Shown here: one piece after another, positions 1 through 40,800 of the stretch | Layout of the letters: each line of letters begins with the position of its first letter | Position numbering within the stretch: the first letter of the stretch is position 1 | Position numbers and translations under genes: made by a program | The notes under the pieces: model-generated | The model's database searches: none | Told to the model about the DNA's origin: nothing | Seen by the model: only the letters and a program-made list of their open reading frames with translations | Assembly (NCBI GenBank): GCA_002269645.1 | Contig: NIVC01001425.1 | Location: 1-51,226, forward strand | Length of the DNA stretch: 51,226 nucleotides | Origin: Macrostomum lignano | Taxonomy: Eukaryota | Direction of reading: 5' to 3'

Positions 1-1281
1 CTGAATGTGCGCTGCACCGCACGGCTGGCTGCAGCGGCAGCTTTTTCTGCTGTTTCGGGCAGCTCCGGCGTGGCGCCGCTTCGGCCGCACTCGGCCGTCG
101 AAACGGCGCTGCTGCCAGTTCGAGCGTCTTTGGAGTCGACGAACGCTCTGGCGAAGTACTTGGTCTCCACCGACTGCTGCGGCTTTTGTCGCTGCAGGGG
201 CTGCGGCGTTGTCGATCTGCGAGTCTTTTGCGTCGGCCGACCTCCCTGCAACCGCCTTCCAGCACTGCTGCTGCCGTTCGCATTCAGGACAGGGGCCGCT
301 CCCACGAGCTGTCTTCCTGAAGCGCCCGAGGCCTGGCCCGCAAGGCGAGGGCTCCGCCAGTCGCCGGTGTCGCCAGTGTCGCCTCTGTTGTCGTCTTCCA
401 ACTCGTCTGCGGTGACCACCGCGGCCGCAGCGGCGTTGTTCCGGTTTACCGTGTGCTGCACGCCACTGTGCCGCGTCAGAGCTGCCTGCTGCAGACAGTC
501 GAGCTGCTGCTGCTGCTGCTGGACAGTCTGCCGCGGCTGATCGCCCAAGGCGGGGCAGGGATCTGCTGGCTCCGGGCAGCGGCAGCCACAGCGGAGGTCC
601 TGCGTGTTGCGATACACCATGGCAGCCATGTGCAGCACGAAGTCGAATCTTGCAGGTCATGTAATTCGGCCGCCACGCACCGCCTGCCCGCTGCTGCATG
701 CTGAGCAGAGTTGGGTCCGGCAGGGCGTTGCGCAGCTCCTTCACTGCGCTGGGGCTGGCGCCGCACATGCTCAACGTGTCGGCGTAGATCTTCTCAAATA
801 GGCGCATCAGATTGCTGAGCAGGGCGTCCATGTTGGCCACGTACCAGCCGGCCATGGCCTGCCGGTTGTGACTGCCAGCTGAGGGGTAATTGTACGCCGG
901 TCCTTCGCGAACCTTTGCGGCCTGCTGCCCTGCAGCCTGCGGCCGTAGCGGCGTTGGCGGCTTGCATGGCTGGGGCACCGGGCCGCTGCAGACGGCAGCT
1001 CTGCGCTCAGGCACTGGCGGCTGCCGAGGCTGCTGCTGGCAAAACTGCGGCTGCTGCGGCTGCTGGCACTGATGCTGCTGTTGAGGCTGCTGCTGAGGCT
1101 GCCACTGCTGCTGCGGTGTCTGCCTGACATCGCCAGCTCTTGGCCACCGGCTGTTGTTGCCAGTAGTTCCACCGCAGCTGGCGCCGTTGCCACAGCAACC
1201 GAGTCCGCCTCCGTGCCGAGCAGTCGATCGCGGCGTCTGCCTGAGTCCCCTTTTGTGGTTGAGTCGGGAGAATGGGCGGCT
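1..1281 (-). CDS. Exon 2 (runs to or beyond the window edge) of an unknown gene; Q/S/A-rich low-complexity protein, reading frame ambiguous
   Basis: Acceptor TTTTTTCAAAG(AG) at about 1280-1290 followed by GC-rich sequence. One minus frame is open from 1281 to base 1 and includes a protein-like segment (AMAGWYVANMDALLSNLMRLFEKIYADTLSM) and a poly-Q tract. The ORF-track frame 807..1343 stops at 807. Confidence 0.4.
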
Positions 1282-1497
1282 CTTTGAAAAAAGATGTACA
1301 AAAAGTGGGATTTCGAGTGGGAATTACAGATTTTAAACTTCAAAAATATTTTGCTATGTCCTTGGAGCCATTACTAATGGCATTAGCTGTGCAAACTTTG
1401 ATATCAGTGCGTTCACACTTGCGATAGTCTCTGACGATACTTTTGACTGCTCTCCACCCTCTCGCAGGCACTCCACAGGTGCGCACAGCGAACTCAC

Positions 1498-1892
1498 TGC
1501 GAGTTGTTTGACTGGCCGTCCCAGCGCGCGTCGAAGTTCTCAACGCCGGCGTCGCCGCTCCGACTGGTGCCGCGACTTCGGCCAGGCGTCGCCGTCCGCG
1601 AAGACTCCGAGCTGGCGTACTTCGTCTCGCAGCTGCTGCCGACTGCGCCGTCGCCGAATCCGCCTTGGGCGCCGCTGGTGTCGCAGGCGAGCTCGCGCAG
1701 CCGGGCCGCATTGGCGCGGCTGAAAAGCAGCTGGACGGCCCGGCGGATGAGGCGGTAGTGAAGGTCGGCAACGGCCTCGTCAAACAGCTGGCTGCACAGC
1801 CGCAGGCCGCCCTTCCACTTCAGCGCGTTGGCAAGGCCGGGGCGCCGGGCGATCTCCGTCTGCAGGAACTGCTCGAACAGCTTCAGCGACAT
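1498..1892 (-). CDS. Exon 1 of an unknown gene (MSLKLFEQFLQTEIARR...)
   Basis: ATG at 1892. The ORF ends at a strong donor TCGCA|GTGAGT (1498/1497), phase 2. Protein-like amphipathic N-terminus; no family recognised. Confidence 0.55.
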
Positions 1893-2139
1893 GCCGCTGC
1901 GGGGCCGGCGGCCGCCCTCGCCTCCCTCAGCGCTGGGAGCCTCTGGCCATCAGTCGGGGATTGCCGGCCGGATGTGGCGCATGCTGGGAAGCTGGGGAAG
2001 GAAGTCTCTATAGGGGATGCGGATGGGCGGTTCCTCAGTGCGGAGGGTGTCTCGTCTAAAGTCCTCAGTTTGGGCCACAGACGAATAGCGACTGGCATGC
2101 GTGGACTGGCGATGACTTATTTGGTAACTTTTTGCTCTT

Positions 2140-2889: not shown

Positions 2890-5800
2890 TCACGCCTCAT
2901 CTGAGACGTGCAACACAGCGGATTTGCACCTTCCCACAATTTTATCCATTGTCGACGCAGCGGCCTGGCGACTTTGTCTGGACTCCGTCTCCGACGTTTT
3001 CAGCGAATCGCCCGTCGACCATGCCGTCGGTTTTGCTAGCGACGACGAGACAGCGGCAGTGGCGGCGGCGGCGGCGGTGACTGCAGCGGAGGCCGAGACG
3101 GCTGCTGAGTCGGCGTGCCCGCTGCACAGGTGAGCCTCGATGCGGTCCAGCCGCTGGCGCAACTCGCTTAGGGCTTCGAGCACGTCGCCGAATGCTGTCG
3201 CATTGACTGCACCGGCCCGATCGCCGCTGCCGCCTCGACCGAGCTCTGCCTGACGACCCTTGAGCGCGAAGATTTGGTAAATAAAAAAGTACAAGCAGTT
3301 CTTTGGACTAGAGCGCGGCTGAACGCGCTGAACCAGGCAACGATTGCAACTGTTGAAGATTGTCTTGCAGAGCAGCAGAGGAATGTCCAGCACATTCAAT
3401 GGGGGAGGAAACGGAGAGCGAGCCTTGAACTCGGCCACCAGGTCGTAGCGCTCGAACTGCCAGAGGGCGCGGGATTTATTGTGGATTTCGTCCACTGTCT
3501 TGCTAAACAGGGCGATTAACAGGTTCAGCAGCAGCACATTGGTGATGATGATGTACACGATGAGAAAGAAGTCCGGCACTACAACCTTTCCAATTTTGTG
3601 CGGAGCCGGGCAGTTCTCTTTACCGCAATGATTTTTGCCCATTATGTTCTCATTGGAGTACTCGCCCAGCATGGTGTAGAATGTGAACCGAAGCATGTTC
3701 TCCATAACCTGCAAGTTGAGTAGACAAACATCGTTATTATATTTTATTGTTTTTGAAGTACGAATTTAACAAAGCCTAGATCTTTTTTACTTACATCCAT
3801 CGAACTAGCGGACTGGTGCGACGCGTCAGTCCCGTTGCTGGAGAAGGGTGGATACAGCAGGGCTTGAAACGTGACGCCGAAACCCGCCATAAACACCAGT
3901 ACAATGGACAGGAAAGGAATCAGATCTTGCAGCACCATTTTAGATATCATTTTCAGCTGCGGTCCGAGGCTCTCCAAAACAGACAGCACGTACAGCATCC
4001 GCATATAGAAAGCCAGCAGAGCAACACAGTACATGATTCGCGTGTAGTACAAGTTTGTGTGCACCATCTGGGTAACTTGAGTTGCGGAGCAGCTGCACAG
4101 ATTGTGCTGATGATGATGGTCTGAGTCTGCTGATGAATAGCCGAAGCAGCAATAAAGGTGGGTCACCCATCTGATGACCAGTCCAACTGTTGCCGAGCCC
4201 AGTGACGCCATATCCAGCATATTCCACTTACTGGTGAAGTAGTGATGAAGACTTTTGCTGCGCAGGCTGATCAGAAATTCGCGAACCTCTTCCAGGAAGT
4301 AGCCGAAAAGAAAGATGTACAGAACGTACTCCCACAACGAGCAGCGTTCCTCAACGTCGAACAGAACGATGCGACTAAGAAGAAGTAGGAAGGCAACGTT
4401 GAAGACTGTGTGATACCAGAACTTTGTCGATGGTATTCCGTAGAAGTCTCGGATCAAAGAAAAATAATACAAACAAGGATTCCGCACCTTGTTGGGAATG
4501 ATTAGAGTTGCGAGATCATTGTTACAAGCATTGTCATCGGGATGATGGTCGACAGTCTTTGAGCCGATACCATCGCTGCTGACAGAAGCTGCCCCGACTC
4601 CGCTAGAGGCCGCACCTCCAGTGGCGGCAGCAGCAGCATCAGCGTTTCGACCGCGAAATATGGATGTTTTGCCGGTACGCTTAAAACCGGACTCAAAAGT
4701 CCTTATGCTATAAGATTTGTTGCCGAGACTGCGTTTTCGAATATTTCGAGTATAGTTGAAGAAAAATGGCAGCGTAATAAAAAATGGCGTCATGCCAGCA
4801 AAGAACAACAGAAGTTTCTTGGATCGACGAAACTGGTAGGTTGAAAGGTACCAGTCGAGGTCCAGGGCCGTCTGACAAACAGGAAGCTGCATAAAGCGCT
4901 CTGACTCACCGATGGCCGCCAGATCAATGCAAGAAAAGCCACCATACCTAGGAAGACCTTCGCGGATGAAGCGCAGCGTTACGGCACTCCTTGGCGACGT
5001 GTCCATGTTGCTGCTGACGGTCAGAGCATCAATTACGACGCTTTCACACCGGCTGGCGCACTGCAGGAACGGTTGCTCCTGTGTCACGTTAAGACGCGTG
5101 TTTTTCAACAATCCACGCAAGAGGACTACCGCAAACAGTCCCAGTGGAATGATATCCGTTGTTTCCATGCGGAGTAGCAGCTCTGTAAGCTGAAACTTCT
5201 CCATCAGAATGGACCAAACGACAAGCGAGCGCAGCGGATCCTTCAGCAGCTGATATTTGTCCTTGCTTCCATGCGCTAGATTCACCATAGTTAACTCGCG
5301 CAACCAATTGTTCATTTTGTCGAACATTACTTGCCCATCGTAGACAAACTGCTCCTTGATGAATGGTATGAAAGTTGTAGAGCATCGAGTTGGACACTGG
5401 ATGTACAGCTCTGCAATGTTTTCTTCGATAAGCGCCAGCATCCTCTGCCAGATGCTGCCGCACTCAGTGACGCAATTAACAATGCCGAGATCGTCGCGGT
5501 AAAGACCGAACTTCACCACAGCGCCTGTTAGCTGTTGCAAGCCGGCCTCATCTGAGCGGTTGTGAAGGCGCCGATGGAACCGTAGCAAGCACTGTCTGAG
5601 ATCGTCCGTATCCAAATTGACAGCGGTCAGAAGGGCACGTAGAACTGCAGCTTCTGCTTCGTCGTCGAGCTGTTCCGGCTGCAGCTGCTGACCTCCGCAG
5701 CCTGTCATACAGTCCCAGGCCAGTTCACTTCTCTTGCACAGGCTGTTAGACCGGCTAATTGTTTTAAGAACCAGCAGCAGCTCGTGATACTTGGGAATGA

Positions 5801-6949
5801 GCAGAGCGATAGGTCGGGAGTCCGATGAAACCTGTTTAGCAAAATAGAGACACAGTTCCCGCACCAATTGCTGGTTGTTGTTGAGCAACAGAAGGTCGAT
5901 TGGTGTCACACCGGATTTGTCGCAGAGCTCCAACCTGGCGCCGCGGTCGACCATGTAGGTAAGCAGCTCCATGTTTCCATTGATAGCCAGGATGTGCAGA
6001 CAGGTCCGACCATTCGGATCGGATGCGTTGGCATTTGTGAACTGCAGAAGGCAGTCGATGAGCTCCCGGCGCTCCTCCATAGCGGCGCGGTGCAGCGGCA
6101 AGCAGCCGAGCCTGTCACGAGCGTCTGGCCGGGCTCGGTAGTACAGAAAGATGGTGAGAAATTTTGTGTCCTTGATGGAACAGCAGCGGTGCAAGCAGTA
6201 GTCACCATTTGGATAGGGTATGTTTGGATCTACGCCCGATTCCAGCAAGTTCACCACTAGCCGGATATCCTCGTTGTTAAGCGCCAGATGCAGCGGAACC
6301 AGGCCGCGCTTATTCCGCAAGTTTAACTTTGCGCCTCGCTTTGCTAGAATCTTGAAAAAGTCTGAATCGTGGCGCTCTACACTTAGATGGACGACAGTGT
6401 TGCCAGTGTTTGTATCTTGCAAATCCAAAGCGCACGACCGCGCCATCAGAGCTTCTTGGTACCAGGATTCACCGTCGGTGTACACAGCGCTGATCAGCGG
6501 CACGCCGTCATTGTAGAACAGACAGCTGAGGCTGGCGCCGCGTTGGAGAAGCAAGCTGAACAGAGCCTTGTTGCGCAGCTTGTAGGCGAAAGCCAGCGGT
6601 CGCAAGTTGTTCGCCAGCTCTTCATTGAGCAGCTCGGGTTCTCGCAAAGTATAGCCTTAACTTCGGAAAGATTGCCAGCAGCCAGTGCCGCTGTCAGACG
6701 GTCGCCGAACGGAGAAATCTTAAAGAAGCGCTCCTTGGTGCGAGACAAGGCAGAGCCAAGACGGCTCTCCCAGTTGCTGGTGCTGCCTTCTGTACCGGCT
6801 GTTGTGGTTGCCGGCTCTGCTACTGAAATGGCTGGGTTGCCACCGCTGTGATGACGAGCCATTTCGATGTTGAACGACGAATGCTTCGCTCGATAGGATC
6901 TTAGCTTGGGAATACTATTCGCAGCGCTTCGCTGAGTTTCGCTGAGCAT
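2890..6949 (-). CDS. TRPM-type cation channel with N-terminal ankyrin repeats; exons 6949-3795 and 3708-2890; 1-nt frameshift near 6636-6648
   Basis: About 8-9 ankyrin repeats (e.g. GNTVVHLSVE, GLVPLHLAL, GRTCLHILAINGN), then TRPM-like MHR4 (DPLRSLVVWSIL; CIDLAA..SERFM..VCQTALDLDW), S2-S5 (WNMLDM; LGPQLKMISKM), pore (FYTMLGEY), S6/TRP box (NVLLLNLLIALFS...LWQFERYDLV...PPPLNVL) and a coiled coil. The 86-nt GTAAGT..TTGCAG intron is phase 0. Confidence 0.9.
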
Positions 6950-7481: not shown

Positions 7482-9490
7482 TCACTTCTGTTTGCCTTCC
7501 TTCGATTTTACGTCACGTTTTGTCGAGGACTTGTTTGGAGACCGAATTTTCGACTTGCGATCAGCTGCGGCTGAAGCCTGTGCTGCTTGTTGCGGCCCGT
7601 GGGCTGTGCCGTCCTCGCTGCCGCCATAGCGACCGCCGCTTGTTCGGACAGTTTCGTAGCTCCGCTTCGACCGGAACTGAGAGTCCAGCCCGCCCTCCCG
7701 ACGGCAGCAGTCGTGCAGGCGCTGATCGCAGCTGCACGAACGGGTCAACAGAACTTGTTCCAGCTGTTCGTTGCTGCGATCCAACTGGGCGGTCAGAGCC
7801 TCAACAGTCTCCTCCATGTCGCTGTTTCCAGCTGCCCCAGCACCTGCTGCAGATTGTTTCAGCTCGGCCAATTCAGCTTGCACTTTTGACAAATCGGCGC
7901 TGAGACGCGCACGCGCCGTCTGGCTCGCGTCCAGTTGGCGTCGAAAGCTGAGCAGCCGACGCCGCAGGTCGCGATTCTCCGCCTCGGCCGTCTCTCGCTG
8001 GCGCTGCGCTTCTTCTTGGACAGACTCTAGCTGGGCCGCCTGGGTCTCAAGACGAGCTGCCAGGGAATCGATCGTCTCCTGCAGCTCCTCCGCCAGGCGC
8101 CTCCAGTTAGTTGAAGTGTCGGGGCTTTCGGCCTGTGGGCCTGCCTTTGCATCGATGGATCTAAGAGGGGTAAGTTTTGCGATCACAGTTTTTTGCTATT
8201 CTTATGCTCATAGTTTGCCAGCAGTAAGTGATCTTTTTAGAGCCCGGTCATTATTCATTAAGCTGATGCAATCTCGTGGCTAGCCCCGATGTACATTTAT
8301 TCAGCTGTCCAGCGGCACAAAGATTGAACAGTGCTATTGGTGACCCAGCTACTGGTTGGTGATACTTTCCCACGTTGCTGAACTCTGTGCCGTCACGGAT
8401 ACTAAAATAACTAGATAGGCCACTCTGAACTGGCATAACTTAGCAAAACAGCTTTCTACTTTCAGTTCAGTAGCAAAGAAGAATACAAAAGCGATTTTAT
8501 AAAATAAAGGCAGCTGAAATGACTTTGATAAGTTTAGAAGCCCAAGCTTGCAGGCGTAAACAACTTGCTAATTGGTTCACCAATAATGTAGATTGGCCAG
8601 TTCAATGAAATGTACATGGCAGCTTTAGGCTGGAATTCCGAGAAAGGCAATAAAAATTGGGGTGGGGAGGGGCAGGGTTTTTTTATTTTATTAGAGGCAG
8701 GGGGTTGTGTGCACCCTGGCGCACTTTAGGCGACATAGGCACACAACCGGCGAGAGGCATTACTGCCCATTCCGCCGACTCCCCTGAGCAGGCATACAAG
8801 CGCGCGGATACGTTACGCAGACACACACTCACACAGGAGTGTACAGCGGCCCTAACTTTATCAATTGTTAGGCATGTACATTTCACTGCGCCTTGGGGGG
8901 TTGGCTCTCAAGGCCGTTAATTGCACAGGCGAGCCAAGCCGAAATTCCAATTCAGCCCCAAATTAATGTGGCTGCACTTGGAATCGAGCCTGGGTCGCTG
9001 GCACACCAGAGCAGCTGCGCTACCGCTGGGCTACGGCCCCCTATGGCGGGGGAGGGTTTAAGCTGGGGGGAGGAGTCAATAAATGAGCATTGGCTTTAAA
9101 AATACATTAAAATGCTTCAGTTTAACTTACTACTGAACTGAAAGTAGCTTACACGCAAATGTGCTGAGTGGGCCATTTAGTTATTCTAGTTAGTGTATCT
9201 GTGGCTAGACAGAGAAAGTAACGGGAGTTTTTCACTTGGCCAAATGGAAAGTGACCGACAAACAGCACTTACGACGCTGCTTTTCCAGCCAGTTGGTGAA
9301 TAATCTGATTAATTCCAGCTTCAATTCGATCCAACTTGGCATTAGCCGAGCTTTGAGGTTTCTTCTTGTTGCCGACAGAAGAAGCGGACGGCGATGCTTT
9401 GCTGTCGGAAATGTTCGAAGACTTTGCTGTAGCTGTCTCTGACAAACCGTCTGCCACGTGGCTGATTGAATCCGGACTACTCGTAGCCAT
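7482..9490 (-). CDS. Coiled-coil protein of unknown family, about 298 aa; exons 9490-9273 and 8160-7482
   Basis: ATG directly follows an acceptor-like ATTCAG. Donor GTC|GTAAGT at 9273 and acceptor CTCTTAG| at 8160 are both phase 2. Heptad-rich sequence (LAEELQETIDSLAARLETQAAQLESV). Confidence 0.75.
8679..9041 (-). mobile_element. tRNA-headed SINE, family 1 (most complete copy), intronic
   Basis: Minus strand begins GGGGCCGTAGCCCAGCGG (A box) ... GGCTCGATTCC (B box), followed by a body of about 280 nt and an AATAAAATAAAA tail. Two further copies occur in the window. Confidence 0.85.
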
Positions 9491-12962: not shown

Positions 12963-15870
12963 GGTGTCAGGTTTTGCAGCAATGTGTCAGGTTCTGCAGT
13001 GATATGACAGGTTCTGCAGCAATGTGTCAGGTTCTGCAGTGATATGACAGGTTCTGCAGTGATGTGTCAGGTTCTGCAGTCGTGTGTCAGGTTCTGCAGC
13101 AATGTGTCAGGTTCTGCAGTGATATGACAGGCTCTGCAGTGATGTGTCAGGTTCTGCAGTGATATGACAGGTTCTGCAGTGATGTGTCAGGTACTGCAGT
13201 CATGTGTCAGGTTCTGCAGCAATGTGTCAGGTTCTGCAGTGATATGACAGGTTCTGCAGTCATGTGTCAGGTTCTGCAGTCGTGTGTCAGGTTCTGCAGT
13301 CATGTGCCAGGTTCTGCAGTCATGTGTCAGGTTCTGCAGTCATGTGTCAGATTCTGCAGTCATGTGTCAGGTTCTGCTGTGATCTGTCAGGTTCTGCTGT
13401 GATCTGTCAGGTTCTGCTGTGATCTGTCAGGTTCTGCTGTGATCTGTCAGGTTCTGCAGTGATGTGTCAGGTTCTGCAGTCATGTGTCAGGTTCTGCAGT
13501 GGTGTGTCAGGTTCTGCAGTGATGTGTCAGGTTCTGCAGTGGTGTGTCAGGTTCTGCAGTCATGTGTCAGGTTCTGCTGTGATATGACGGGTTCTGCAGT
13601 GATGTGTCAGGTTCTTCTGTGATCTGTCAGGTTCTGCAGTGATGTGTCAGGTTCTGCTGTGATCTGTCAGGTTCTGCAGTGATGTGTCAGGTTCTGCTGT
13701 GATGTGTCAGGTTCTGCTGTGATGTTTCAGGTTCTGCAGTGATATGACAGGTGCTGCAGTGATGTGTCAGGTTTGTTGTGATGTGTCAGGCTCTGCAGTG
13801 ATGTGTCAGGTTCTGCAGTGATCTGTCAGGTTCTGTGGTGATGTGTCAGGTTCTGCAGTCATGTGTCAGGCTCTGCAGTGATCTGTCAGGTTCTGCAGTG
13901 ATGTGTCAGGTTCTGCAGTGGTGTGTCAGGTTCTGCAGTGGTGTGTCAGGTTCTGCAGTGGTGTGTCAGGTTCTGCAGTCATGTCTCATGTGTCAGGTTC
14001 TGCTGTGATATGACGGGTTCTGCAGTGATGTGTCAGGTTCTGCTGTGATATGACGGGTTCTGCAGTGATGTGTCAGGTTCTGCTGTGATCTGTCAGGTTC
14101 TGCAGTGATGTGTCAGGTTCTTCTGTGATCTGTCAGGTTCTGCAGTGATGTGTCAGGTTCTGTTGTGATCTGTCAGGTTCTGCAGTGATGTGTCAGGTTC
14201 TTCTGTGATCTGTCAGGTTCTGCAGTGATGTGTCAGGTTCTGTTATGATCTGTCAGGTTCTGCAGTGATGTGTCAGGTTCTGCAGTCATGTGTCAGGCTC
14301 TGCAGTGATGTGTCAGGTTCTGCAGTCATGTGTCAGGCTCTGCAGTGATGTGTCAGGTTCTGCAGTCATGTGTCAAGTACTGCAGTGATGTCTCAGGTTC
14401 TGCAGTCATGTGTCAAGTACTGCAGTGGTGTCAGGTTCTGCAGTCATGTGTCAAGTACTGCAGTGGTGTCAGGTTCTGCAGTCATGTGTCAAGTACTGCA
14501 GTGGTGTGTCAGGTTCTGCAGAGATGTGTCAGGTTCTGCTGTGATGTGTCAGGTTCTGCAGTGATATGACAGGTGCTGCAGTGATATGACAGGTGCTGCA
14601 GTGATATGACAGGTGCTGCAGTGATATGACAGGTGCTGCAGTGATATGACAGGTGCTGCAGTGATGTGTCAGGTTCTGCTGTGATGTGTCAGGTTCTGCT
14701 GTGATGTGTCAGGTTCTGCAGTGATATGACAGGTGCTGCAGTGATATGACAGGTGCTGCAGTGATATGACAGGTTCTGCAGTGATGTGTCAGGCTCTGCA
14801 GTGATGTGTCAGGTTCTGCTGTGATGTGTCAGGTTCTGCTGTGATGTGTCAGGTTCTGCAGTGATATGACAGGTGCTGCAGTGATATGACAGGTGCTGCA
14901 GTGATATGACAGGTTCTGCAGTGATGTGTCAGGCTCTGCAGTGATGTGTCAGGCTCTGCAGTCATGTGTCAGGTACTGCAGTCATGTGTCAGGTTCTGCA
15001 GTGATGTGTCAGGTTCTGCTGTGATGTGTCAGGTTCTGCTGTGATGTTTAAGGTTCTACAGTGATATGACAGGTGCTGCAGTGATGTGTCAGGTTCTGCT
15101 GTGATGTGTCAGGCTCTGCAGTGTTGTGTCAGGTTCTGCAGTGATATGACAGATGCTGCAGTGATATGACAGGTTCTGCAGTGATGTGTCAGGCTCTGCA
15201 GTGATGTGTCAGGTTTTGCAGTCATGTGTCAGGTACTGCAGTCATGTGTCAGGTTCTGCAGTGATGTGTCAGGTTCTGCTGTGATGTGTCAGGTTCTGCT
15301 GTGATGTGTCAGGTTCTGCAGTGATATGACAGGTGCTGCAGTGATATGACAGGTGCTGCAGTGATATGACAGGTTCTGCAGTGATGTGTCAGGCTCTGCA
15401 GTGATGTGTCAGGCTCTGCAGTCATGTGTCAGGTACTGCAGTCATGTGTCAGGTTCTGCAGTGATGTGTCAGGTTCTGCTGTGATGTGTCAGGTTCTGCT
15501 GTGATGTTTAAGGTTCTACAGTGATATGACAGGTGCTGCAGTGATGTGTCAGGTTCTGCTGTGATGTGTCAGGCTCTGCAGTGTTGTGTCAGGTTCTGCA
15601 GTGATATGACAGATGCTGCAGTGATATGACAGGTTCTGCAGTGATGTGTCAGGCTCTGCAGTGATGTGTCAGGTTTTGCAGTCATGTGTCAGGTACTGCA
15701 GTCATGTGTCAGGTTCTGCAGTGATGTGTCAGGTTCTGCTGTGATGTGTCAGGTTCTGCTGTGATGTGTCAGGTTCTGCAGTGATATGACAGGTGCTGCA
15801 GTGATATGACAGGTGCTGCAGTGATATGACAGGTGCTGCAGTGATATGTCAGGTGCTGCAGTGATGTGTC
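12963..15870. repeat. 20-nt minisatellite (TGTCAGGTTCTGCAGTGATG), about 145 copies, between the two PIPOX copies
   Basis: Directly visible tandem array with variant units. Confidence 0.97.
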
Positions 15871-16222
15871 AAAAGCCTATGAGTCTTAAAAGAACCTAGG
15901 TAGTTAAACGCAGATGTTTAAGCAAAAAAGCTAGGGTATTGGTAGTGAGGAGGGCTCTATTTCTTTAAAAATCAGGTAACCAAAAGTTAAGTCAATCAAC
16001 TTGCTAATAAGTATCAGTCAAAGAAATATAAATTTTGTGTATTTGTTGATAACAGGAGAAATCAATGAAAAATCAAGTAAATAAATTGTATTGAAAACTA
16101 AATAAAAATCGATCTCAAACCATATAGCAGTTTAAATAAAAACACAATTAGAAATACCAAAATTTTTATGCTAAAACATGCGAATTAAAACCATAAACAA
16201 AATCATTTCCGACACTTGCAGC

Positions 16223-21485: not shown

Positions 21486-23492
21486 CTAAATGCAACTATC
21501 GAGTCTAATCTCAGCGATGGCTTTCAACATTCGCTCCCGCTCAGTTGGGTCATTCACGCCCATGCCAATCAGGTCGTCTTCCGTTAGCAACAGGAATGCG
21601 TCGGCATCGATCTCCTGCTCGCGCAGAGTGGGCAGATAAGCGGACAATCCGAATTTGCCTAGCAACAAAGTCAGTTTGTCGTCGTCTGCGGTTGTAAATC
21701 GGAACAAAGGATTGCAAATCCCATTGCCAGGCCGGACTAGGAGACTGGGAGCGAACAGTTTGGCTTGATTCCCAGCTACAGACAGCGACTCTGTCTGGGG
21801 CAAACGCGCCAACATCTGGTGCACTTTTGTAAGCGCCTCGCGCCAATCCGGCGCCGCTTGAACTAGACGTTCGGCGCCAATCCAATGAGATTCAGCGTAG
21901 CCGGGATTGCCAAGCGTGTCGCGCCAGCGATCTGCGAATTGGTTGGCCATGCAAGAGAAGCGGACTGTCTTTTTGCTGGAGGCCACTTCGAGTGGCGGTG
22001 GCGGCCGTGGCGGCAGTGGCGGCGGCGAAGGGCCTGGCGGTGAGCGACAGCAAGAGAGAAGCAGGTCGCTTTTGCGCCTGGGGCGGAGCTCAGTGCTCAG
22101 CTGCTGTTGTTGCTTCGTGCAGTCTTCAAGTTCTCCGGCTGCTGCTGGTTGGAGAGGCCTTGATGCTTCTGTCCGAGTCTCCGTCTCGCTGTCCGAGTCT
22201 TCCTCGCCGTCGCTGCCGGCTGGAAGCAGCCTCGCCAGCTTGCAGTGGCCCAACAGTCTGGCTACCTGGCGCGGCGTCAGCCCGTTGATGTCGCGTCGGG
22301 AGCCCGAAGCTCCGGCCTGTTCAATCACCAGGCTGCACGCCTCGGCGCAACCACCCGCGGCAGCCGCGTGCAATGGCGAAGTCGCCGCGCTGTCGCCGGC
22401 ACCGTCAAACGGAAAGCCGCGCGCCAGCAAGTAGCGCATCGAGCCCATGGCGCCGCGAAATGCAGCCGGACAGAGCGGCGCGCCGAGTTGGCGAGCGACT
22501 CGAAAACCGCCGTCGGATTCTTCGACCGCAAACTTTGCGCCTTTGTAGCTTTCGTCTCTTGCCACACCTCCGCTTCCGCCTCTATCCACACCTCCGCTTC
22601 CGTCTCTATCCACACCTCCGCTTCCGTCTCTATCCACACCTCCGCTTCCGTCTCTATCCACACCTCCGCTTCCGTCTCTATCCACACCTCCGCTTCCGTC
22701 TCTATCCACACCTCCGCTGCCGTCTCTATCCACACCTCCGCTGCCGCCTCTATCCACACCTCCGCTTCCGTCTCTATCCACATCTCCGCTGCCGTCTCTA
22801 GCCACACCTCCGCTTCCGCCTCTATCCACACCTCCGCTTCCGTCTCTATCCACACCTCCGCTGCCGTCTCTATCCACACCTCCGCTGCCGTCTCTATCCA
22901 CACCTCCGCTTCCGTCTCTATCCACACCTCCGCTGCCGTCTCTAGCCACACCTCCGCTGCCGTCTCTAGCCACACCTCCGCTTCCGCCTCTAGCCACACC
23001 TCCGCTTCCGCCTCTAGCCACACCTCCGCTTCCGCCTCTATCCACACCTCCACTTCCGTCTCTATTAACGCCTCCATCGCTTCCACAATCGGTGGCCAGG
23101 GCCAGCCCGGCCAGGAACTCCATCAGCCTGACGTGATTGCCAGCAGCGGCCAACGTGAATCCATCGGCGCCATAGACGGTGACCCGGCGAGTGTCCGCCC
23201 GGCGTGCCAGGACACGCGCCGCGGCCAGATGGCCCAGACGGCAGGCGACAAGAAACGGACTCCAGCCAAGCAGATTAACGGCATCCGGGTCGAGCCCGTG
23301 CCGTTCAATCAGTTCGTTGATTGCGGCGGTACAGCCTCCGGCGGCCGCATAGTGCAGCGCGGTGTTGCCGTGGTTGTCAAGCCGGCGAAGATCCTCTGGA
23401 GTTGACGGAGCCGCCGACAATCGGGCCAATATTTCAGCCTCCTTGCCGGAGATTAGCAGCGAGAATAGAACAGTGCCGCTGTCGGAAGACAT
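21486..23492 (-). CDS. Ankyrin repeat and SAM domain protein (ANKS3-like), apparently single exon, 668 aa
   Basis: Ankyrin repeats ([49 protein letters not shown]) and a C-terminal SAM domain ([38 protein letters not shown]). The orthologue among ANKS genes is not certain. Confidence 0.8.
22560..23070. repeat. 24-nt minisatellite (CCTCCGCTTCCGTCTCTATCCACA), about 21 copies, inside the ANK-SAM ORF
   Basis: In frame on the minus strand, encoding (GGVDRDGS)n. Confidence 0.95.
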
Positions 23493-31819: not shown

Positions 31820-34800
31820 CTAGCTTTCGAGAGTCTCCTGGGCTTCAGCGGCCACTGCCACCGGAGCAGCGGCAGCCGGCGGCGCCGCCTCGAACAGTCG
31901 AGTGCCGCTAAAGCCGATCTCAATTTCATTCGGCCCAGTTGCCGATGCCGCCTCTGTTAACGTTGAATCGTTGCCGCCGCCGCGCCTTAGCGACAAGCCG
32001 GCGCCGGTAACGGCTGCGGCATCTTCAGAGCCCGGCGGCAGGTCGAAAGCGGCGTCAACAACGGAGCCGGGGCCCAGGCCGAGATGGCGCAGCTGAGCCT
32101 TAGCCGGCTCGAGCTCGCGACCGTCAACCAGCAGGTGCTGATCGTACGGAGCGACACCGTAGGCTTCCATGAGTCGCAGCTTTAAATCTTGCACAGTGGC
32201 TTCCGAATCGATGTCGAATCGTTTGTCGGTTGGCTTGCGACGAATTCTGGACGACCTCCATGGCTGCGGTTGCTGCTGAGCAGATTTGGCGCACTTCGTC
32301 GGCGGTGACTTAATACCATTGCCGACGCCGCCCTCGTCAGCGGCGGCATCCGCGGTGGCCGACTGATCGGTCGAAGCCGCCGAGGTGGCCGCTCGCTTCC
32401 TGCCGGCGCTCGAACGCGTGCTAGCGGCGTACCCGCCGGGCCGCACAGATCCCCGGGCATCCTCGGCTACCCTCACGTAGATTGTCATTTTAAATCCGGC
32501 GCCAGCGTCGCCAACTTCCCCACCGGCCGCGTCGCCGGCGTCGCCTGCTGATGCGGCATCGGCCGCTGAGTCGAGGCATTCGTCGCAGACGGGCGGCTGG
32601 CAGGAGTCGTCCTCTAGGCGGCAGATTTCAACACCGTCGCTGGAATAGGCGTCGACTAAAGCCAGCCATTCGTCTTGGGTCAGGGCGACAAGGCCAGAGT
32701 CGGCCGAGTCTGGCCGGCAGAGCAGGCGGCCGTGCGGGCACAGGTGACCGGAGTTCGGCACCGGGCCGCCTGGTGGCTCAGTCAGCGGCGTCGCTGTCGA
32801 TTCCTCCTCGGCGGCGGCGACCGCAGCGGCAACCACAAAACGACGCCATTGGACAAGAAATTCTGCGTCGGCGTAATAAATCTTGCGGCCGGCGCAGTCG
32901 GCCAGGCTCAACAGGCGCTGAGGCCCGCTGCCAGTTGGCCGGTGGCGCTTCAGGTGTGCGGACAGGTGGAACAGCCGGTCGGTCTCGGCCTGAGCCCGAC
33001 TAGTCAGCCTGGCCCGCTGATCAGAGCACACCGGACAGGGCTTGGCATCGTGCCAATAAACCGGACAGTTCGGGAAGTAAGCAGCTAATCTGTGCCAGAT
33101 CTCCTCCGGTAGGAGGCGGCGCCGGCCAGTCTCGCAGCAGAGATTGCCGTGCTGGCAAAGCAGGTCTTCGTTGAAGGCGAAGCCAACTGTCGCCGGATGG
33201 CCGTTGCTGACCGCCTGCTGATTGGCTGTCAGGGTTAATTAAAAAAATTGATTTCATAGAAATCAAATCACTATTCTAACATCGCTTCTGACGATCTAAA
33301 TGGCAATTTGGACAATCAAAACGGGACGCCATAGACATTCAAGCCAGGCCGCAGATCTCACCCTAGTCATGGACTTTAGCAGTTTAGCAGAGTCTACTGA
33401 GGGAGGCTTGGCCATAGACTATTGGGAATCGGACTGAGATTTTCTAGCTCTCTGTCCCTCCCGATCCACTGTTTTCTCGTCTTTGACCTGAAGGGTGTCA
33501 GCAGATCGCCAGCGGCTGATTGATGCGATTGCACAAGGGTCATTCATCGAAGGAAGCTGCGCAAGAATCCTGCAAATCAAGAAAACAAGCGCATTCCGAA
33601 TCGCTGCCAGAGTAGAATCCCTTCTTCGCGGTGGTTGGAAAGAAGGATTTTGCAAGGAAATGAGAGAATTCTTGGTTGAGAAACTCGATGAAAATCCTTT
33701 CCTGAAGATCAGGGAGTTCTGAGTTACTTTTGTTTTGCTTCCGGTAACGAAGACTTTGTTCACTTTTAAATATTCTAGTGGCCTCGAGATATAAAACAAT
33801 ACATTAAATTGGGCGAATTACCGTTTTGAATGGCTTTTTCCCATTTTGAGTGTCCATTCCACATTATATGATTGTGCATTCCCAAGCAGCCCGAGTCTGC
33901 GGCCTGGCTCGAATGTCCATGGCGTCCCATTTTGAGTGTCCATTCCACATTATATGATTGTGCATTCCCAAGCAGCCCGAGTCTGCGGCCTGGCTTGAAC
34001 GTCCATGGCGTCCCGTTTTGATTGTCCAAATGCCCATCGAGGTGTCTCAAAAGTTCTCGGAATGTTTGCTCTAGCTCCTCAGTACCTTGACTTATTTTTA
34101 TATTTTACGTGTCAAACTAAAGATAATTTTTCAACGAAAAAAATTTGTCATTTGAGTTTATTTTTCATGCGGCTTCGTTTAAGATTTACAACAGGGACTT
34201 TAAAGGAAGGAAGGAAAGAAGAATAAAATAATAAAACCAAATCGAACGTCTGTGACATTTTAGTAGCGGAAATCCTTGGTTCTTAAAAGTTAAAAATATT
34301 TTTTAAATAGAAAGCCAGACTCACAACAGACACTGCCGCTCTGTTCTGTCGCAGCGGAACCGTCAGTATTATCCTGATCATCTTCAACAGCAGAAGCTGG
34401 CGCTGACTCTTCTTGGTGCTGCTGGCGGGCCAGGTTCTTCCAGGAGCGAAGAGACTTCACGCCAACCCAGGCTGATCGAGACGAAGCGCCGCTGTTGCTG
34501 CTACTAGAAGCTTGGCCGTTTTGCTGGCAAATTGATGGGTGGAGTCAAAGAATTACAAATTAAAACAGTCGATTTTAAAATGCCACAATGCATCTCGTTT
34601 CACTTAAGATGCTAATCCCAAGCATGCCCTTCAGGTGAGTGGCAGCTACTCTTAAACATTCCCTTCAGGTGAGGAGCTGATGGTCTCAAACATTCCCTTC
34701 AGGTGATCTCAAACATGCCCTTCAGGTGAGCAGCTGCTAATCCCAAACATGCCGTTCAGGTGAGCAGCAGCTACTCTTAAACATTCCCTTCAGGTGATCT

Positions 34801-37800
34801 CAAACATGCCCTTCAGGTGAGCAGCAGCAACTCTTAAACATTCCCTTCAGGTTATCTCAAACATGCCCTTCCGGTCAGGAGCTGATGGTCTCAAACATTC
34901 CCTTCAGGTGATCTCAAACATGCCCTTTAGGTGAGCAGCTGCTAATCCCAAACATGCCGTTCAGGTAAGCAGCAGCTACTCCTAAACATTCCCTTCAGGT
35001 GATCTCAAACATGGTCTTCAGGTGAGCAGCTGCTAATCTCAAACATGGTCTTCAGGTGAGCTGCTGTTGCTAATCTCAAACATGGTCTTCAGGTGAGCAG
35101 CTGCTAATCTCAAACATGGTCTTCAGGTGAGCTGCTGCTGCTAATCTCAAACATGGCCTTCAGGTGAGCTGCTGTTGCTAATCTCAAACATGGTCTTCAG
35201 GTGAGCAGCTGCTAATCTCAAACATGGTCTTCAGGTGAGCAGCTGCTAATCTCAAACATGGTCTTCAGGTGAGCAGCTGCTAATCTCAAACATGGTCTTC
35301 AGGTGAGCAGCTGCTAATCTCAAACATGGTCTTCAGGTGAGCTGCTGCTGCTAATCTCAAACATGGTCTTCAGGTGAGCTGCTGTTGCTAATCTCAAACA
35401 TGGCCTTCAGGTGAGCTGCTGCTGCTAATCTCAAACATGGTCTTCAGGTGAGCAGCTGTTGCTAATCTCAAACATGGTCTTCAGGTGAGCTGCTGTTGCT
35501 AATCTCAAACATGGCCTTCAGGTGAGCTGCTGTTGCTAATCTCAAACATGGTCTTCAGGTGAGCTGCTCTTGCTAATCTCAAACATGGTCTTCAGGTGAG
35601 CTGCTGCTGCTAATCTCAAACATGGTCTTCAGGTGAGCTGCTGTTGCTTATCTCAAACATGGTCTTCAGGTGAGCTGCTGTTGCTAATCTCAAACATGGT
35701 CTTCAGGTGAGCAGCTGTTGCTAATCTCAAACATGGTCTTCAGGTGAGCTGCTGTTGCTAATCTCAAACATGGCCTTCAGGTGAGCTGCTGTTGCTAATC
35801 TCAAACATGGTCTTCAGGTGAGCAGCTGCTAATCTCAAACATGGTCTTCAGGTGAGCAGCTGCTAATCTCAAACATGGTCTTCAGGTGAGCTGCTGTTGC
35901 TAATCTCAAACATGGCCTTCAGGTGAGCTGCTGTTGCTAATCTCAAACATGGTCTTCAGGTGAGCTGCTGTTGCTAATCTCAAACATGGTCTTCAGGTGA
36001 GCAGCTGCTAATCTCAAACATGGTCTTCAGGTGAGCAGCTGCTAATCTCAAACATGGTCTTCAGGTGAGCTGCTGTTGCTAATCTCAAACATGGCCTTCA
36101 GGTGAGCTGCTGTTGCTAATCTCAAACATGGCCTTCAGGTGAGCTGCTGTTGCTAATCTCAAACATGGTCTTCAGGTGAGCAGCTGCTAATCTCAAACAT
36201 GGTCTTCAGGTGAGCAGCTGCTAATCTCAAACATGGTCTTCAGGTGAGCTGCTGTTGCTAATCTCAAACATGGTCTTCAGGTGAGCTGCTGTTGCTAATC
36301 TCAAACATGGTCTTCAGGTGAGCTGCTGTTGCTAATCTCAAACATGGTCTTCAGGTGAGCTGCTGTTGCTAATCTCAAACATGGCCTTCAGGTGAGCTGC
36401 TGTTGCTAATCTCAAACATGGTCTTCAGGTGAGCTGCTGTTGCTAATCTCAAACATGGTCTTCAGGTGAGCAGCTGCTAATCTCAAACATGGTCTTCAGG
36501 TGAGCAGCTGCTAATCTCAAACATGGTCTTCAGGTGAGCTGCTGTTGCTAATCTCAAACATGGTCTTCAGGTGAGCTGCTGTTGCTAATCTCAAACATGG
36601 TCTTCAGGTGAGCTGCTGTTGCTAATCTCAAACATGGTCTTCAGGTGAGCTGCTGTTGCTAATCTCAAACATGGTCTTCAGGTGAGCTGCTGTTGCTAAT
36701 CTCAAACATGGTCTTCAGGTGAGCAGCTGCTAATCTCAAACATGGTCTTCAGGTGAGCTGCTGTTGCTAATCTCAAACATGGTCTTCAGGTGAGCTGCTG
36801 TTGCTAATCTCAAACATGGTCTTCAGGTGAGCTGCTGTTGCTAATCTCAAACATGGCCTTCAGATGAGCTGCTGTTGCTTATCTCATAAACATCGGTTTA
36901 GCGCGCATCCACCTGGACAGAAATATGGCAAACCCACCGGCAGGTGATGCTGGTACTCCGGCTTGCGCTTAGCCGCCTTGTCAATCAGTTTGGCATCGGT
37001 AGCCAGCCTCGAGTCCAGTCGAATCCTGGCGCATCGCTGCCGCACGCAGGCCAGACAGAGTGCCGACTCGCCGGCAAGAAACGGCGCTGGCACGGGTGTC
37101 ACTACGGAGTCAGTCGACATCGCGTCGTCGTCTTCAGCTGCTTTGCCGTCAGGCTCAGCGGCGCTGGCGCTGCTGCTCTGGTTATTGGAGAGAAAATCGA
37201 ACAGGTCCCGATTGACAGCTTTGACGTGCGGACCGACGCACTCGGGCAGCAGGCGGCCGTGCGGGCAGACGTACTGGGCGTAGGCACAGGAGTCCAGGGT
37301 GCGCAGGAAGAAGGCAACTTCGTCGCCGGATTCGCCAACGTCCTCTGGGCTGCTGTTGAATACTGTCTGCGCGAAATGTTTTGCTATGTTGCTTATAATA
37401 GGAGTAAAATTGGTCGCTTTTTCTACGAATACCGATAGGGGCATCACCAAACTGGCTCCCGTGACGCTAAATCGATCCCCTCATAGAGCGCCACATAGGG
37501 AACCCAAAACTACTCATGAGATGTTAAAGTGCTCATAAAAGCTAAAACTACTCACGAAAAGTTTCAACTGCTCATGAGAAGCTAAAACTGCTCATGAGAA
37601 GCTAAAACTGCTCATGAAAAGCTAAAACTGCTCATGAGAAGCTAAAACTGCTCATGAGAAGCTAAAACTGCTCATGAAAAGCTAAAACTGCTCATGAGAA
37701 GCTAAAACTGCTCATGAGAAGCTAAAACTGCTCATGAGAAGCTAAAAACTGCTCATGAGAAGCTAAAAACTGCTCATGAGAAGCTAAAAACTGCTCATGA

Positions 37801-40800
37801 GAAGCTAAAAACTGCTCATGAGAAGCTAAAAACTGCTCATGAGAAGCTAAAAACTGCTCATGAGAAGCTAAAAACTGCTCATGAGAAGCTAAAAACTGCT
37901 CATGAGAAGCTAAAAACTGCTCATGAGAAGCTAAAAACTCTCATGAGAAGCTAAAAACTGCTCATGAGAAGCTAAAAACTGCTCATGAGAAGCTAAAAAC
38001 TGCTCATGAGAAGCTAAAAACTGCTCATGAGAAGCTAAAATCTACTCATGAATCTAAAACTGCTCATGAGAGAAGCTGAAACTGCTCATGAGAGAAGCTG
38101 AAACTGCTCATGAGAGAAGCTGAAACTGCTCATGAGAGAAGCTGAAACTGCTCATGAGAGAAGCTGAAACTGCTCATGAGAGAAGTTAAAATCAGCTTAT
38201 GAAAAGCTAAAACTGTTCCTGGGAACCAAATCTGCTCATATGAAGCTAAAAACTGCTCATATGAAGCTAAAAAAACTGCTCATATGATGATCCAAATCTG
38301 CTCATGGAGAGCTAAAGACATTCTTAAGTAGCCGTAGCCAGATTCACTTTAACATATATCTATGACTACCCGACCAAGGGCCCAAAAAAGATGAAATTAA
38401 ATATGAAATACAGACAGGCACACAGATTGACAAATCAAGCTAACCTGCAACCAGGCAGACGGTACAAAAGCGTGACAATCAACTCGTTGAAGCAGCGGCA
38501 GCACCCGGCTAGCCAGCCTGCCCAGGAAGTCCCGATGCCGACGCTCGCGTCTAGCAACTGCGCTGGCCAGGCGAGCCCGGGCAACGTTCTCAGCGTTAAC
38601 CAGCTCGGCCAGTTTGTCCGGCACCGCGGCCAGATTAGGATTAGCCTTGTGCGCTTCGAATACGCTGCGCTTCTCGTACACTAGAATGTAGGCATTCTGC
38701 GACAGATGCCAGTCTTTCCCGGGCACAGCGGCCGAGGCTTTCTCAGTTGGCCGGCTGGCCGAGTACCCCATCGACTGCTCCAGCTTCTCTTCTTGTCGCT
38801 TTAATAGCTTGTGCTTCACTGGGTACACCTGGCTATCGTTGCACACCAGCCAGCCCCGGCTGTAGTCCCGAACTATGGCCACGTAGTGACCGCCTGTGGC
38901 CTGCGTGTGTTCAATATAACAGTGCAGTTATTGCTATTGGAAGGCTGGATGGAATAAGCTAGATAGGATTTACTCGCTTCAACATAATCCACAGAGACAG
39001 GATTAACTCGCCCCCATTATAATCTACCGACAGGATTAACACCCCACCATAATCTACAGACAGGATTAACACCCCACCATAATCTACAGACAGGATTAAC
39101 ACCCCCACTATAATCTACAGACAGGATTAACACCCCCATCATAATCTACAGACAGGATTAACACCCCCACCATAATCTACAGACAGGATTAACACCCCAC
39201 CATAATCTACAGACAGGATTAACACCCCCACCATAATCTACAGAGAGGATTAACACCCCACCATAATCTACAGACAGGATTAACACGCCCACCATAATCC
39301 ACAAAGACAGGGTTAACACCCCACCATAATCCACAAAGACAGGATTAACACCCCACCATAATCTACAGAGACAGGATTAACTCGCCCCATCAGAAGCTAC
39401 AGAGACAGGATTAACTCGCCCCATCATAAGCTACAGAGACAGGATTAACTCGCCCCATCATAAGCTACAGAGACAGGATTAACTCGCCCTATCATAAGCT
39501 ACAGAGACAGGATTAACTCGCCCCATCATAAGCTACAGAGACAGGATTAACTCGCCCCATCATAAGCTACAGAGACAGGATTAACTCGCCCTATCATAAG
39601 CTACAGAGACAGGATTAACTCGCCCTATCATAAGCTACAGAGACAGGATTAACTCGCCCCATCATAAGCTACAGAGACAGGATTAACTCGCCCCATCAGA
39701 AGCTACAGAGACAGGATTAACTCGCCCTATCATAAGCTACAGAGACAGGATTAACTCGCCCTATCATAAGCTACAGAGACAGGATTAACTCGCCCCATCA
39801 TAAGCTACAGAGACAGGATTAACTCGCCCCATCATAAGCTACAGAGACAGGATTAACTCGCCCCATCAGAAGCTACAGAGACAGGATTAACTCGCCCCAT
39901 CAGAAGCTACAGAGACAGGATTAACTCGCCCCATCATAAGCTACAGAGACAGGATTAACACTCCACCATAAGCTACAGAGACAGGATTAACACTCCACCA
40001 TAAGCTACAGAGACAGGATTAACACTCCACCATAAGCTACAGAGACAGGATTAACTCGCCCCATCATAAGCTACAGAGACAGGATTAACTCGCCCCATCA
40101 GAAGCTACAGAGACAGGATTAACTCGCCCCATCAGAAGCTACAGAGACAGGATTAACTCGCCCCATCAGAAGCTACAGAGACAGGATTAACTCGCCCCAT
40201 CATAAGCTACAGAGACAGGATTAACTCGCCCCATCATAAGCTACAGAGACAGGATTAACTCGCCCTATCATAAGCTACAGAGACAGGATTAACTCGCCCT
40301 ATCATAAGCTACAGAGACAGGATTAACTCGCCCCATCATAAGCTACAGAGACAGGATTAACTCGCCCCATCATAAGCTACAGAGACAGGATTAACTCGCC
40401 CTATCATAAGCTACAGAGACAGGATTAACTCGCCCCATCATAAGCTACAGAGACAGGATTAACTCGCCCCATCATAAGCTACAGAGACAGGATTAACTCG
40501 CCCTATCATAAGCTACAGAGACAGGATTAACTCGCCCCATCATAAGCTACAGAGACAGGATTAACTCGCCCCATCATAAGCTACAGAGACAGGATTAACT
40601 CGCCCTATCATAAGCTACAGAGACAGGATTAACTCGCCCTATCATAAGCTACAGAGACAGGATTAACTCGCCCCATCATAAGCTACAGAGACAGGATTAA
40701 CTCGCCCCATCAGAAGCTACAGAGACAGGATTAACTCGCCCCATCATAAGCTACAGAGACAGGATTAACTCGCCCCATCATAAGCTACAGAGACAGGATT

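Follow-up and report, generated by a model that had tools for sequence, protein, structure and literature searches.

Gene structure and domain layout

The DNA analysed here, a 51,226-nucleotide contig of the flatworm Macrostomum lignano (NIVC01001425.1; hereafter the window), carries on its minus strand, at 6862..2890, a two-exon gene. Its product of approximately 1295 amino acids (aa) joins an N-terminal array of ankyrin repeats to a channel of the TRPM type, and very probably belongs to the flatworm clade of TRPM_MCLZ-type (“TRPM-like”) channels. The spliced translation is ~100% identical to the NCBI entry “hypothetical protein BOX15_Mlig007500g6” (P0001, 1295 aa). The contig encoding P0001 (NIVC01002264.1, locus L001) is 99.25% identical to the window over 8.5 kb; an intact sibling copy of the channel gene is present elsewhere in the M. 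lignano genome. In the window, one uninterrupted open reading frame (ORF; 6647..3744, 967 codons) contains the ankyrin repeats, the MHR region and the transmembrane segments S1–S5. It is followed by an intron of 86 nt (3794..3709, GT..AG, phase 0), which separates S5 from the pore helix, and the coding sequence ends with a TGA stop codon at 2890–2892. The span of the annotated sibling gene, 3974 nt for 1295 aa, agrees with a single 86-nt intron. Although an in-frame ATG exists further upstream at 6949, the start annotated for the sibling is the ATG equivalent to window position 6862. Another intron, in the C-terminal part (CLYFFIYQIFALKG), was considered and ruled out, since the sibling gene span leaves room for one 86-nt intron only; the stretch also aligns with conserved coding sequence of paralogues. 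The features of the gene, all on the minus strand and with the basis of each in brackets, are as follows.

6640..6862, minus: first part of the coding sequence, codons 1–74, MARHHSGG... (from the ATG equivalent to the sibling's annotated start)
6637..6642, minus: frameshift site, 1-nt deletion in a C-run at codon 75 (alignment with sibling locus L001)
3795..6639, minus: second part of the coding sequence, the remainder of the first coding exon with ankyrin repeats, MHR3/4 and S1–S5 (one open frame)
5838..6706, minus: ankyrin-repeat array, ~9 repeats, P0001 residues 53–342 (Pfam; AlphaFold2 helix pairs)
5253..5837, minus: helical linker with weak MHR3-like homology, residues 343–537, profile confidence moderate only at ~440–500 (AlphaFold2; profile alignment)
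4764..5252, minus: MHR4 / PF25508 “TRPM2-like” region, residues 538–700 (Pfam; PDB matches; profile alignment)
4485..4721, minus: disordered low-complexity insert before pre-S1, residues 715–793 (AlphaFold2 confidence, pLDDT, below 50)
3978..4445, minus: S1–S4 voltage-sensor-like domain (alignments)
3849..3968, minus: S4–S5 linker and S5 (alignments)
3709..3794, minus: intron, 86 nt, GT..AG, phase 0 (splice signals; sibling gene span)
2890..3708, minus: last coding exon with pore helix, S6, TRP helix, C-terminal helices and TGA stop (ORF reading)
3655..3705, minus: pore helix and selectivity filter, FYTMLGEY (alignments)
3502..3585, minus: S6 (alignments)
3394..3477, minus: TRP helix with TRP box WQFERY and PPPLN motif (PDB matches; alignments)
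3127..3192, minus: C-terminal heptad (coiled-coil-like) helix FGDVLEALSELRQRLDRIEAHL (sequence reading; weak profile alignment)

Alignment of the window with L001 yielded 17 differences across the gene region, 16 of them inside the gene. One is the deletion of a single nucleotide near 6639 in a run of C (CCC in the window, CCCC in L001), which shifts the frame at codon 75 and leaves the N-terminal 74 codons of the window copy (6862..6640) in a different frame from the main ORF. An intron at this place was rejected, since the sole GT..AG candidate near 6640 is 21 nt long and preserves the frame, and since the alignment shows a 1-nt deletion. Both this frameshift and the 86-nt intron had gone unnoticed in the original prediction, a description of the locus made from its letters alone, which was accurate as to the architecture. 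The lesion would be either a homopolymer error of the assembly or a very young, genuine one, i.e., a recent inactivation. If the deletion is genuine, the window copy has become a pseudogene only recently, its normal start codon would yield ~120 residues before a stop, and only sibling copies are functional. The deletion relative to L001 is present in the sequence, and most of these M. lignano genes exist in several near-identical copies, so that the loss of one would be tolerated. On the other hand, the lesion lies in a homopolymer (C4 to C3), where long-read assemblies often make indel errors, and it is the sole disabling change in 3.9 kb. The remaining 13 coding differences comprise 10 synonymous and 3 non-synonymous ones, which points to purifying selection on both copies until very recently. 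We therefore regard a pseudogene as possible but somewhat doubtful.

The domain content was assessed by Pfam scans of the long ORF (6647..3744) and of the 99%-identical annotated sibling protein P0001. Several ankyrin families were matched (Ank_2 with an E-value of 4e-23), as were Ion_trans (E 2e-15) and PF25508, the “TRPM2-like domain”. The latter match is just over the cutoff (29.5–29.9 bits, cutoff 27) and restricted to the C-terminal half of the profile, covering positions 133–255 of 257. No match to LSDAT/SLOG (MHR1/2, PF18139), NUDIX or kinase domains was found in either query, and the same scan readily detects SLOG in the M. lignano TRPMs P0054, P0056 and P0061. Nine ankyrin repeats were counted by eye (P0001 residues 53–342). 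In an AlphaFold2 model with a mean pLDDT of 69.8, for which 14 family members were aligned, seven ankyrin helix pairs are confident (pLDDT 85–93), while the two N-terminal repeats are degenerate or of low confidence; the model further contains a helical MHR region and a well-formed S1–S5. Thus, the N-terminus of eight to nine ankyrin repeats and the lack of a recognizable MHR1/2 or Nudix domain, both claimed in the original prediction, were borne out. Judged by profile and domain matches, MHR4 is present and MHR3 partial. The pore motif LGEY, also noted originally, is found at residues 1037–1040, and the TRP box WQFERY at 1106–1111.

The ~170 residues C-terminal of the TRP helix hold no Nudix or other enzyme domain. 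They include a helix of 22 residues (FGDVLEALSELRQRLDRIEAHL, 1196–1217) with a hydrophobic spacing of 4-3-4-3-4 as read from the sequence; its profile alignment to the TRPM C-terminus is weak (confidence about 4.8). A short coiled coil had been proposed as the end of the protein; the heptad helix exists, but ~75 low-complexity residues follow it.

Relationship to TRPM and other TRP families

When the ankyrin repeats were removed from the query, all of the 60 best sequence matches in PDB were TRPMs (E-values from 9e-35 to 1.5e-18), headed by TRPM2 of Nematostella (NvTRPM2, 6co7, E 9e-35) and followed by TRPM3, 1, 8, 2, 4, 5 and 7. The alignments span MHR4, S1–S6 and the TRP helix, and none of these best 60 matches is a TRPA, TRPN, TRPC or TRPV. 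NOMPC and TRPA1 were matched in PDB by the ankyrin region only (query residues 135–334 and 151–277, respectively). Alignment of the family profile with a profile of 26 SLOG-bearing TRPMs using hhalign was confident for residues 538–1146, i.e., from MHR4 to beyond the TRP helix, and moderate for ~440–500, a part of MHR3; in this comparison, the ankyrin array showed no homology to SLOG. The TRPM-like nature of MHR4, the membrane region and the TRP box, as originally proposed, is thereby confirmed. In Foldseek searches with the whole model, ankyrin proteins, NOMPC and TRPM8/3/4/7/2 appear side by side, in keeping with a composite layout. Generic ankyrin proteins dominate these results, and the TM-scores are low due to uncertain domain packing.

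Compared with known channels, the protein resembles TRPN/NOMPC, TRPA1, TRPC and TRPV in joining an N-terminal ankyrin array to a six-transmembrane TRP channel, and NOMPC is the top whole-model Foldseek match because of this composite layout; these families differ, however, in that no channel-domain sequence match was seen. With canonical TRPMs (6co7, TRPM3, TRPM8, TRPM4) it shares a homologous MHR4, pre-S1, S1–S6 and TRP helix, the PPPL motif, the Ca2+-site positions in S2 and S3 and, as read from the sequence, a C-terminal heptad helix. In contrast to them, the defining SLOG/MHR1-2 is replaced by sequence-canonical ankyrin repeats, MHR3 is weakly recognizable, and Nudix and kinase domains are absent. 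TRPS (C. elegans CED-11 type), the sister family of TRPM with a divergent TRP-domain sequence and a patchy phyletic distribution, is set apart by domain content: TRPS are reported to carry SLOG and Nudix and no ankyrin repeats (PMC7306681), whereas the M. lignano protein has the opposite pattern.

Homologous proteins were searched exhaustively with HMMER among 1.84 billion representative proteins, giving 1789 matches, the best of which (30–41% identity) were scanned with Pfam. Fourteen of the scanned top matches have ankyrin repeats but lack SLOG; Ion_trans is present in 12 of the 14, accompanied by PF25508 in 9. Word-indexed searches using the full protein, its non-ankyrin part or a profile of 15 sequences yielded nothing beyond ankyrin proteins and the cluster of the query itself; with the full protein, ankyrin words swamped the selection of candidates. 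The ankyrin-bearing members originate from ~11 divergent M. lignano clusters (≤50% identity; P0001, P0037, P0038, P0040–P0044, P0046, P0047, P0053), most of which hold 2–4 near-identical gene copies, as well as from Opisthorchis viverrini, O. felineus, Dicrocoelium dendriticum and Schistocephalus solidus. Every member of known source is a flatworm.

Trees were computed by neighbour-joining from 312 trimmed columns, S1 to TRP helix, of 131 sequences; Smp_333650 (the Schistosoma mansoni TRPM_MCLZ), TRPS and an outgroup were not among these. The ankyrin-bearing proteins form one clade (bootstrap 79% with Kimura distances, 95.5% with scoredist), which divides into an M. lignano subclade (~77–84%) and a subclade of neodermatan sequences and members of unassigned source (92–99%).

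An assembly or gene-prediction artefact, in which an ankyrin-repeat gene was fused to a truncated TRPM gene, could produce the same layout, and fusions do occur in flatworm gene models, e.g., P0065, which combines a vinculin domain with a TRPM. Here, in contrast, the ankyrin repeats run through to S5 in one uninterrupted ORF. The layout recurs in ~11 divergent paralogue groups of M. lignano, in trematodes and in cestodes, and one family member is encoded by an undivided ORF of 3.2 kb on an independent Logan contig (DRR639838, P0048). Moreover, the cDNA of the schistosome orthologue is functional (PMC10788528). Since the same layout is found in divergent paralogues, in other flatworms and on the independent contig, we exclude such a fusion for practical purposes and consider it extremely improbable.

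P0065 itself (Clonorchis sinensis, 2116 aa) has an N-terminal vinculin-family domain (E 4e-65) on a large SLOG-TRPM model and probably represents a fusion with an upstream gene.

Probable membership of the flatworm TRPM_MCLZ clade, and origin of the clade

The combination of an ankyrin N-terminus and a TRPM channel is known from parasitic flatworms. TRPM_MCLZ of S. mansoni (Smp_333650; 1380 aa, three exons) is the target of meclonazepam and contains multiple ankyrin-like repeats in its long N-terminal domain (Park et al., PMC10788528). It was obtained by amplification of cDNA and works as a single polypeptide. When expressed, it gives Ca2+ signals and a linear current–voltage relation reversing near 0 mV, which are attenuated in the pore mutant Y1038A; it is a Ca2+-permeable non-selective cation channel activated by (S)-meclonazepam (PMC10788528). 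According to a 2024 review, it lacks the NH2-terminal MHR1/2 or SLOG, has ankyrin-repeat-like modules instead and carries no C-terminal enzyme domain, in contrast to the remaining S. mansoni TRPM paralogues, in which the TRPM/SLOG domain is present (PMC11731825, section 3.1). Rohr et al. (2026; PMC12861061) examine 63 orthologues from trematodes, monogeneans and cestodes and, given the N-terminal ankyrin repeat domains, propose the name “TRPM-like”. Because of the uninterrupted 967-codon ORF and the functional schistosome cDNA, separate transcripts for the ankyrin and transmembrane halves are very unlikely.

Four independent links tie the clade found here to TRPM_MCLZ. The first is domain content: S. 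mansoni TRPM_MCLZ and its trematode, monogenean and cestode orthologues have, like the M. lignano protein, ankyrin repeats in place of SLOG/MHR1-2, a TRPM-type S1–S6 with TRP helix and no C-terminal enzyme domain; by way of the Opisthorchis, Dicrocoelium and Schistocephalus members, they belong to the same neighbour-joining clade. Second, P0039 of O. viverrini (1906 aa) contains two consecutive channel domains (residues 676–1002 and 1355–1689). For Opisthorchis TRPM_MCLZ, a duplication of exon 3 into 3a and 3b has been reported, and exon 3 encodes the whole channel domain; P0039 thus looks like a concatenation of these alternative exons. Third, the Dicrocoelium member P0052 (1378 aa) has H, H, Y, E, R and Y in S1, S2 and S4 at a constant offset of +18 from the published S. 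mansoni residues H827, H831, Y864, E868, R943 and H946; the first S1 histidine was found in the ankyrin-bearing clade and in none of 12 other TRPMs compared. Fourth, UniRef lists the Schistocephalus member as “TRPM7”, and TRPM_MCLZ was formerly classified as TRPM7 (Park et al., PMC10788528).

Of the six residues proposed to contact meclonazepam in S. mansoni (H827, H831, Y864, E868, R943, Y1117), five are kept in the M. lignano protein (H818 in S1, Y855 and E859 in S2, R955 in S4, Y1111 in the TRP box), and the equivalent of H831 is N822. The S4 determinant (H946 in S. mansoni) is Y958, as in low-sensitivity orthologues. Because of this tyrosine and of the asparagine at the H831 position, the meclonazepam sensitivity of the M. 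lignano protein is predicted to be low.

Further differences concern sequence, gene and species. The neodermatan members are ~25–28% identical to the M. lignano protein between ankyrin array and TRP helix. The TRP box reads WQFERY in M. lignano and WLA(E/D)RY in the neodermatan subclade, and the filter LGEY compares with an IFEVS-type filter there. The gene has two coding exons, versus three in S. mansoni; ~11 divergent groups of M. lignano stand against a TRPM_MCLZ that is one of seven S. mansoni TRPM paralogues. Finally, M. lignano is free-living, whereas the hosts of the described TRPM_MCLZ are parasitic flatworms.

Several points weigh against the assignment to TRPM_MCLZ. Clade membership was judged from trematode and cestode proxies together with published residue numbers. 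The position of the intron, which splits S5 from the pore here, is not shared with trematodes; one pocket residue differs, with Asn for H831; and the reading frame of the window copy is broken. In addition, all M. lignano sequences fall into a subclade of their own, so that they are co-orthologues or paralogues and their function may have diverged. Nevertheless, we consider membership of the TRPM_MCLZ-type clade highly probable.

The original prediction had supposed a domain-shuffled or deep-branching TRP subfamily. A domain-shuffled TRPM-type channel it is, but not an undescribed one: the transmembrane domain nests in a described ankyrin-bearing clade, flatworm TRPM_MCLZ (PMC10788528, PMC11731825, PMC12861061), rather than in TRPA, TRPN, TRPV or TRPC. 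The replacement of SLOG by ankyrin repeats is already known, and the clade has been described and functionally characterized. The TRPM_MCLZ papers cited here cover parasitic flatworms, and Macrostomum was not found in them; a supplementary BLAST table lists planarian full-length homologues of Smp_333650, one from S. mediterranea (h1SMcT0013144.1, 32% identity across 1101 residues) and one in a Dendrocoelum transcript. That the family occurs in Macrostomorpha and has expanded there to ~11 paralogue groups appears unreported, because these papers treat parasites only and the broad surveys do not include Platyhelminthes.

As for the origin of the clade, its nearest neighbours in the tree are flatworm SLOG-bearing TRPMs, including Clonorchis and Schistosoma proteins of ~2100–2300 aa, at a support of 34–44%. 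Under midpoint rooting, the clade, the flatworm SLOG-TRPMs and all other TRPMs form an unresolved trichotomy, and the midpoint root, which falls on the branch leading to the flatworm SLOG-TRPMs, is uninformative. A 1-residue indel state in the S4–S5 region is found in 19/19 clade members and in 15/15 neighbouring flatworm SLOG-TRPMs, compared to 5/97 other TRPMs; as a rare character, it favours a link between clade and flatworm SLOG-TRPMs. In some flatworm TRPMs, a few N-terminal ankyrin repeats precede an intact SLOG (P0061, P0232 and P0233 of M. lignano, P0099 and P0235 of Clonorchis/Opisthorchis, P0238 of S. mekongi), a kind conserved from Macrostomum to trematodes. These proteins (e.g., P0061, P0238 and the Clonorchis “TRPM2” KAG5447154.1, which is P0099) share the S4–S5 indel state with the clade. 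They differ from it in keeping SLOG and the full PF25508 with few ankyrin repeats, and lie in the neighbouring group outside the TRPM_MCLZ clade. Their existence indicates that N-terminal additions of ankyrin repeats have happened in flatworms.

Alternatively, the clade might be an ancient TRP lineage that split off before the alpha/beta TRPM or the TRPM–TRPS split and retained ancestral ankyrin repeats, with survival in Platyhelminthes only. The trichotomy with its 34–44% support and uninformative midpoint root would allow this. Rohr et al. (PMC12861061) place TRPM_MCLZ beside, not within, the remaining flatworm TRPMs and use the term “TRPM-like” for it, and broad TRPM/TRPS surveys have not sampled Platyhelminthes. 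Two such papers on TRPM/TRPS evolution report both families without ankyrin repeats and infer an ankyrin-free ancestor; an ancient lineage, if true, would overturn this published “ankyrin-free, SLOG- and Nudix-linked” TRPM–TRPS ancestor. However, all clade members of known source are flatworms, and an ancient origin would require that every other phylum lost the lineage. The protein is of TRPM type in MHR4, in the TRP box and at the S2/S3 Ca2+-site positions, and the clade shares the indel state with all of the neighbouring flatworm SLOG-TRPMs but with few other TRPMs. The branch of the clade is long (stem 0.19; mean depth 1.04 vs. 0.71–0.87), which furthermore invites basal attraction. We consider an ancient lineage improbable; most likely, ankyrin repeats took the place of SLOG in flatworms only. 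That the family was present in the rhabditophoran ancestor, expanded to ~11 groups in Macrostomum and was left with one gene in the parasites has, in our estimate, an even chance of being true.

By homology to S. mansoni TRPM_MCLZ and to solved TRPMs, the M. lignano protein would assemble as a tetramer around a non-selective, Ca2+-permeable cation pore with the filter LGEY. Ca2+ permeability is also plausible from the acidic pore residue and fits the Ca2+ signals of the orthologue. Gating probably occurs via the cavity between S1–S4 and the TRP helix. The S2/S3 residues E859, E862, N881 and D884 (E-E-N-D) align with E-Q-N-D in the SLOG-bearing TRPMs compared, which we take to be the Ca2+ site of TRPM2/4/5/8; regulation by intracellular Ca2+ is plausible on this assumption. 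The ankyrin array would take the place of SLOG as the membrane-distal cytosolic layer and probably serve as an interaction or regulatory module. Since the nucleotide-binding SLOG layer is replaced, regulation by ADP-ribose-type ligands is not expected.

Surroundings of the gene and biological implications

Outside the channel gene, most non-genic sequence of the window consists of ~25 large minisatellite arrays between 11983 and 51193, with periods of 15–91 bp and up to 145 copies, e.g., at 12964–15871 (period 20), 38961–42831 (period 34) and 35002–36886 (period 37). The other genes or gene fragments recognized are located on the minus strand. Approximately 0.5 kb upstream of the channel gene, a coiled-coil ORF of 234 codons (7482–8186) has weak golgin-like or filament-like matches, all below cutoffs. 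A further ORF of 668 codons (21486–23492) combines N-terminal ankyrin repeats with a C-terminal SAM domain and is interrupted by a coding 24-bp tandem repeat (22548–23065, ~22 copies of GSGGVDRD-like units). The ORFs 44086–44787 and 31820–33031 hold the Cys-box start of a ubiquitin C-terminal hydrolase (UCH) domain, matched with E 2e-11, and a ubiquitin-like domain; both probably belong to one USP-type gene as exons distributed over >12 kb of repeat-rich introns. Window positions 1–2000 are GC-rich (64.6% vs. ~50% elsewhere) and show overlapping long ORFs on both strands, likely a composition effect.

What may be new is confined to the presence and expansion of the family in a free-living, early-branching flatworm, which is a modest finding. 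It corrects a generalization of surveys without flatworms, namely that ankyrin repeats do not occur in channels of the TRPM type. Two TRPMs are validated drug targets in schistosomes, TRPM_MCLZ being one of them; the papers cited on it name no natural activator or physiological role and have analysed parasitic flatworms only. The architecture with ankyrin repeats in place of SLOG is present and strongly expanded in M. lignano. The species is culturable and amenable to RNA interference and transgenesis, and it offers a way to study what this type of channel senses and what the ankyrin array does. If the family was indeed present in the rhabditophoran ancestor, M. lignano would be a tractable model for the natural stimulus of an anthelmintic target.

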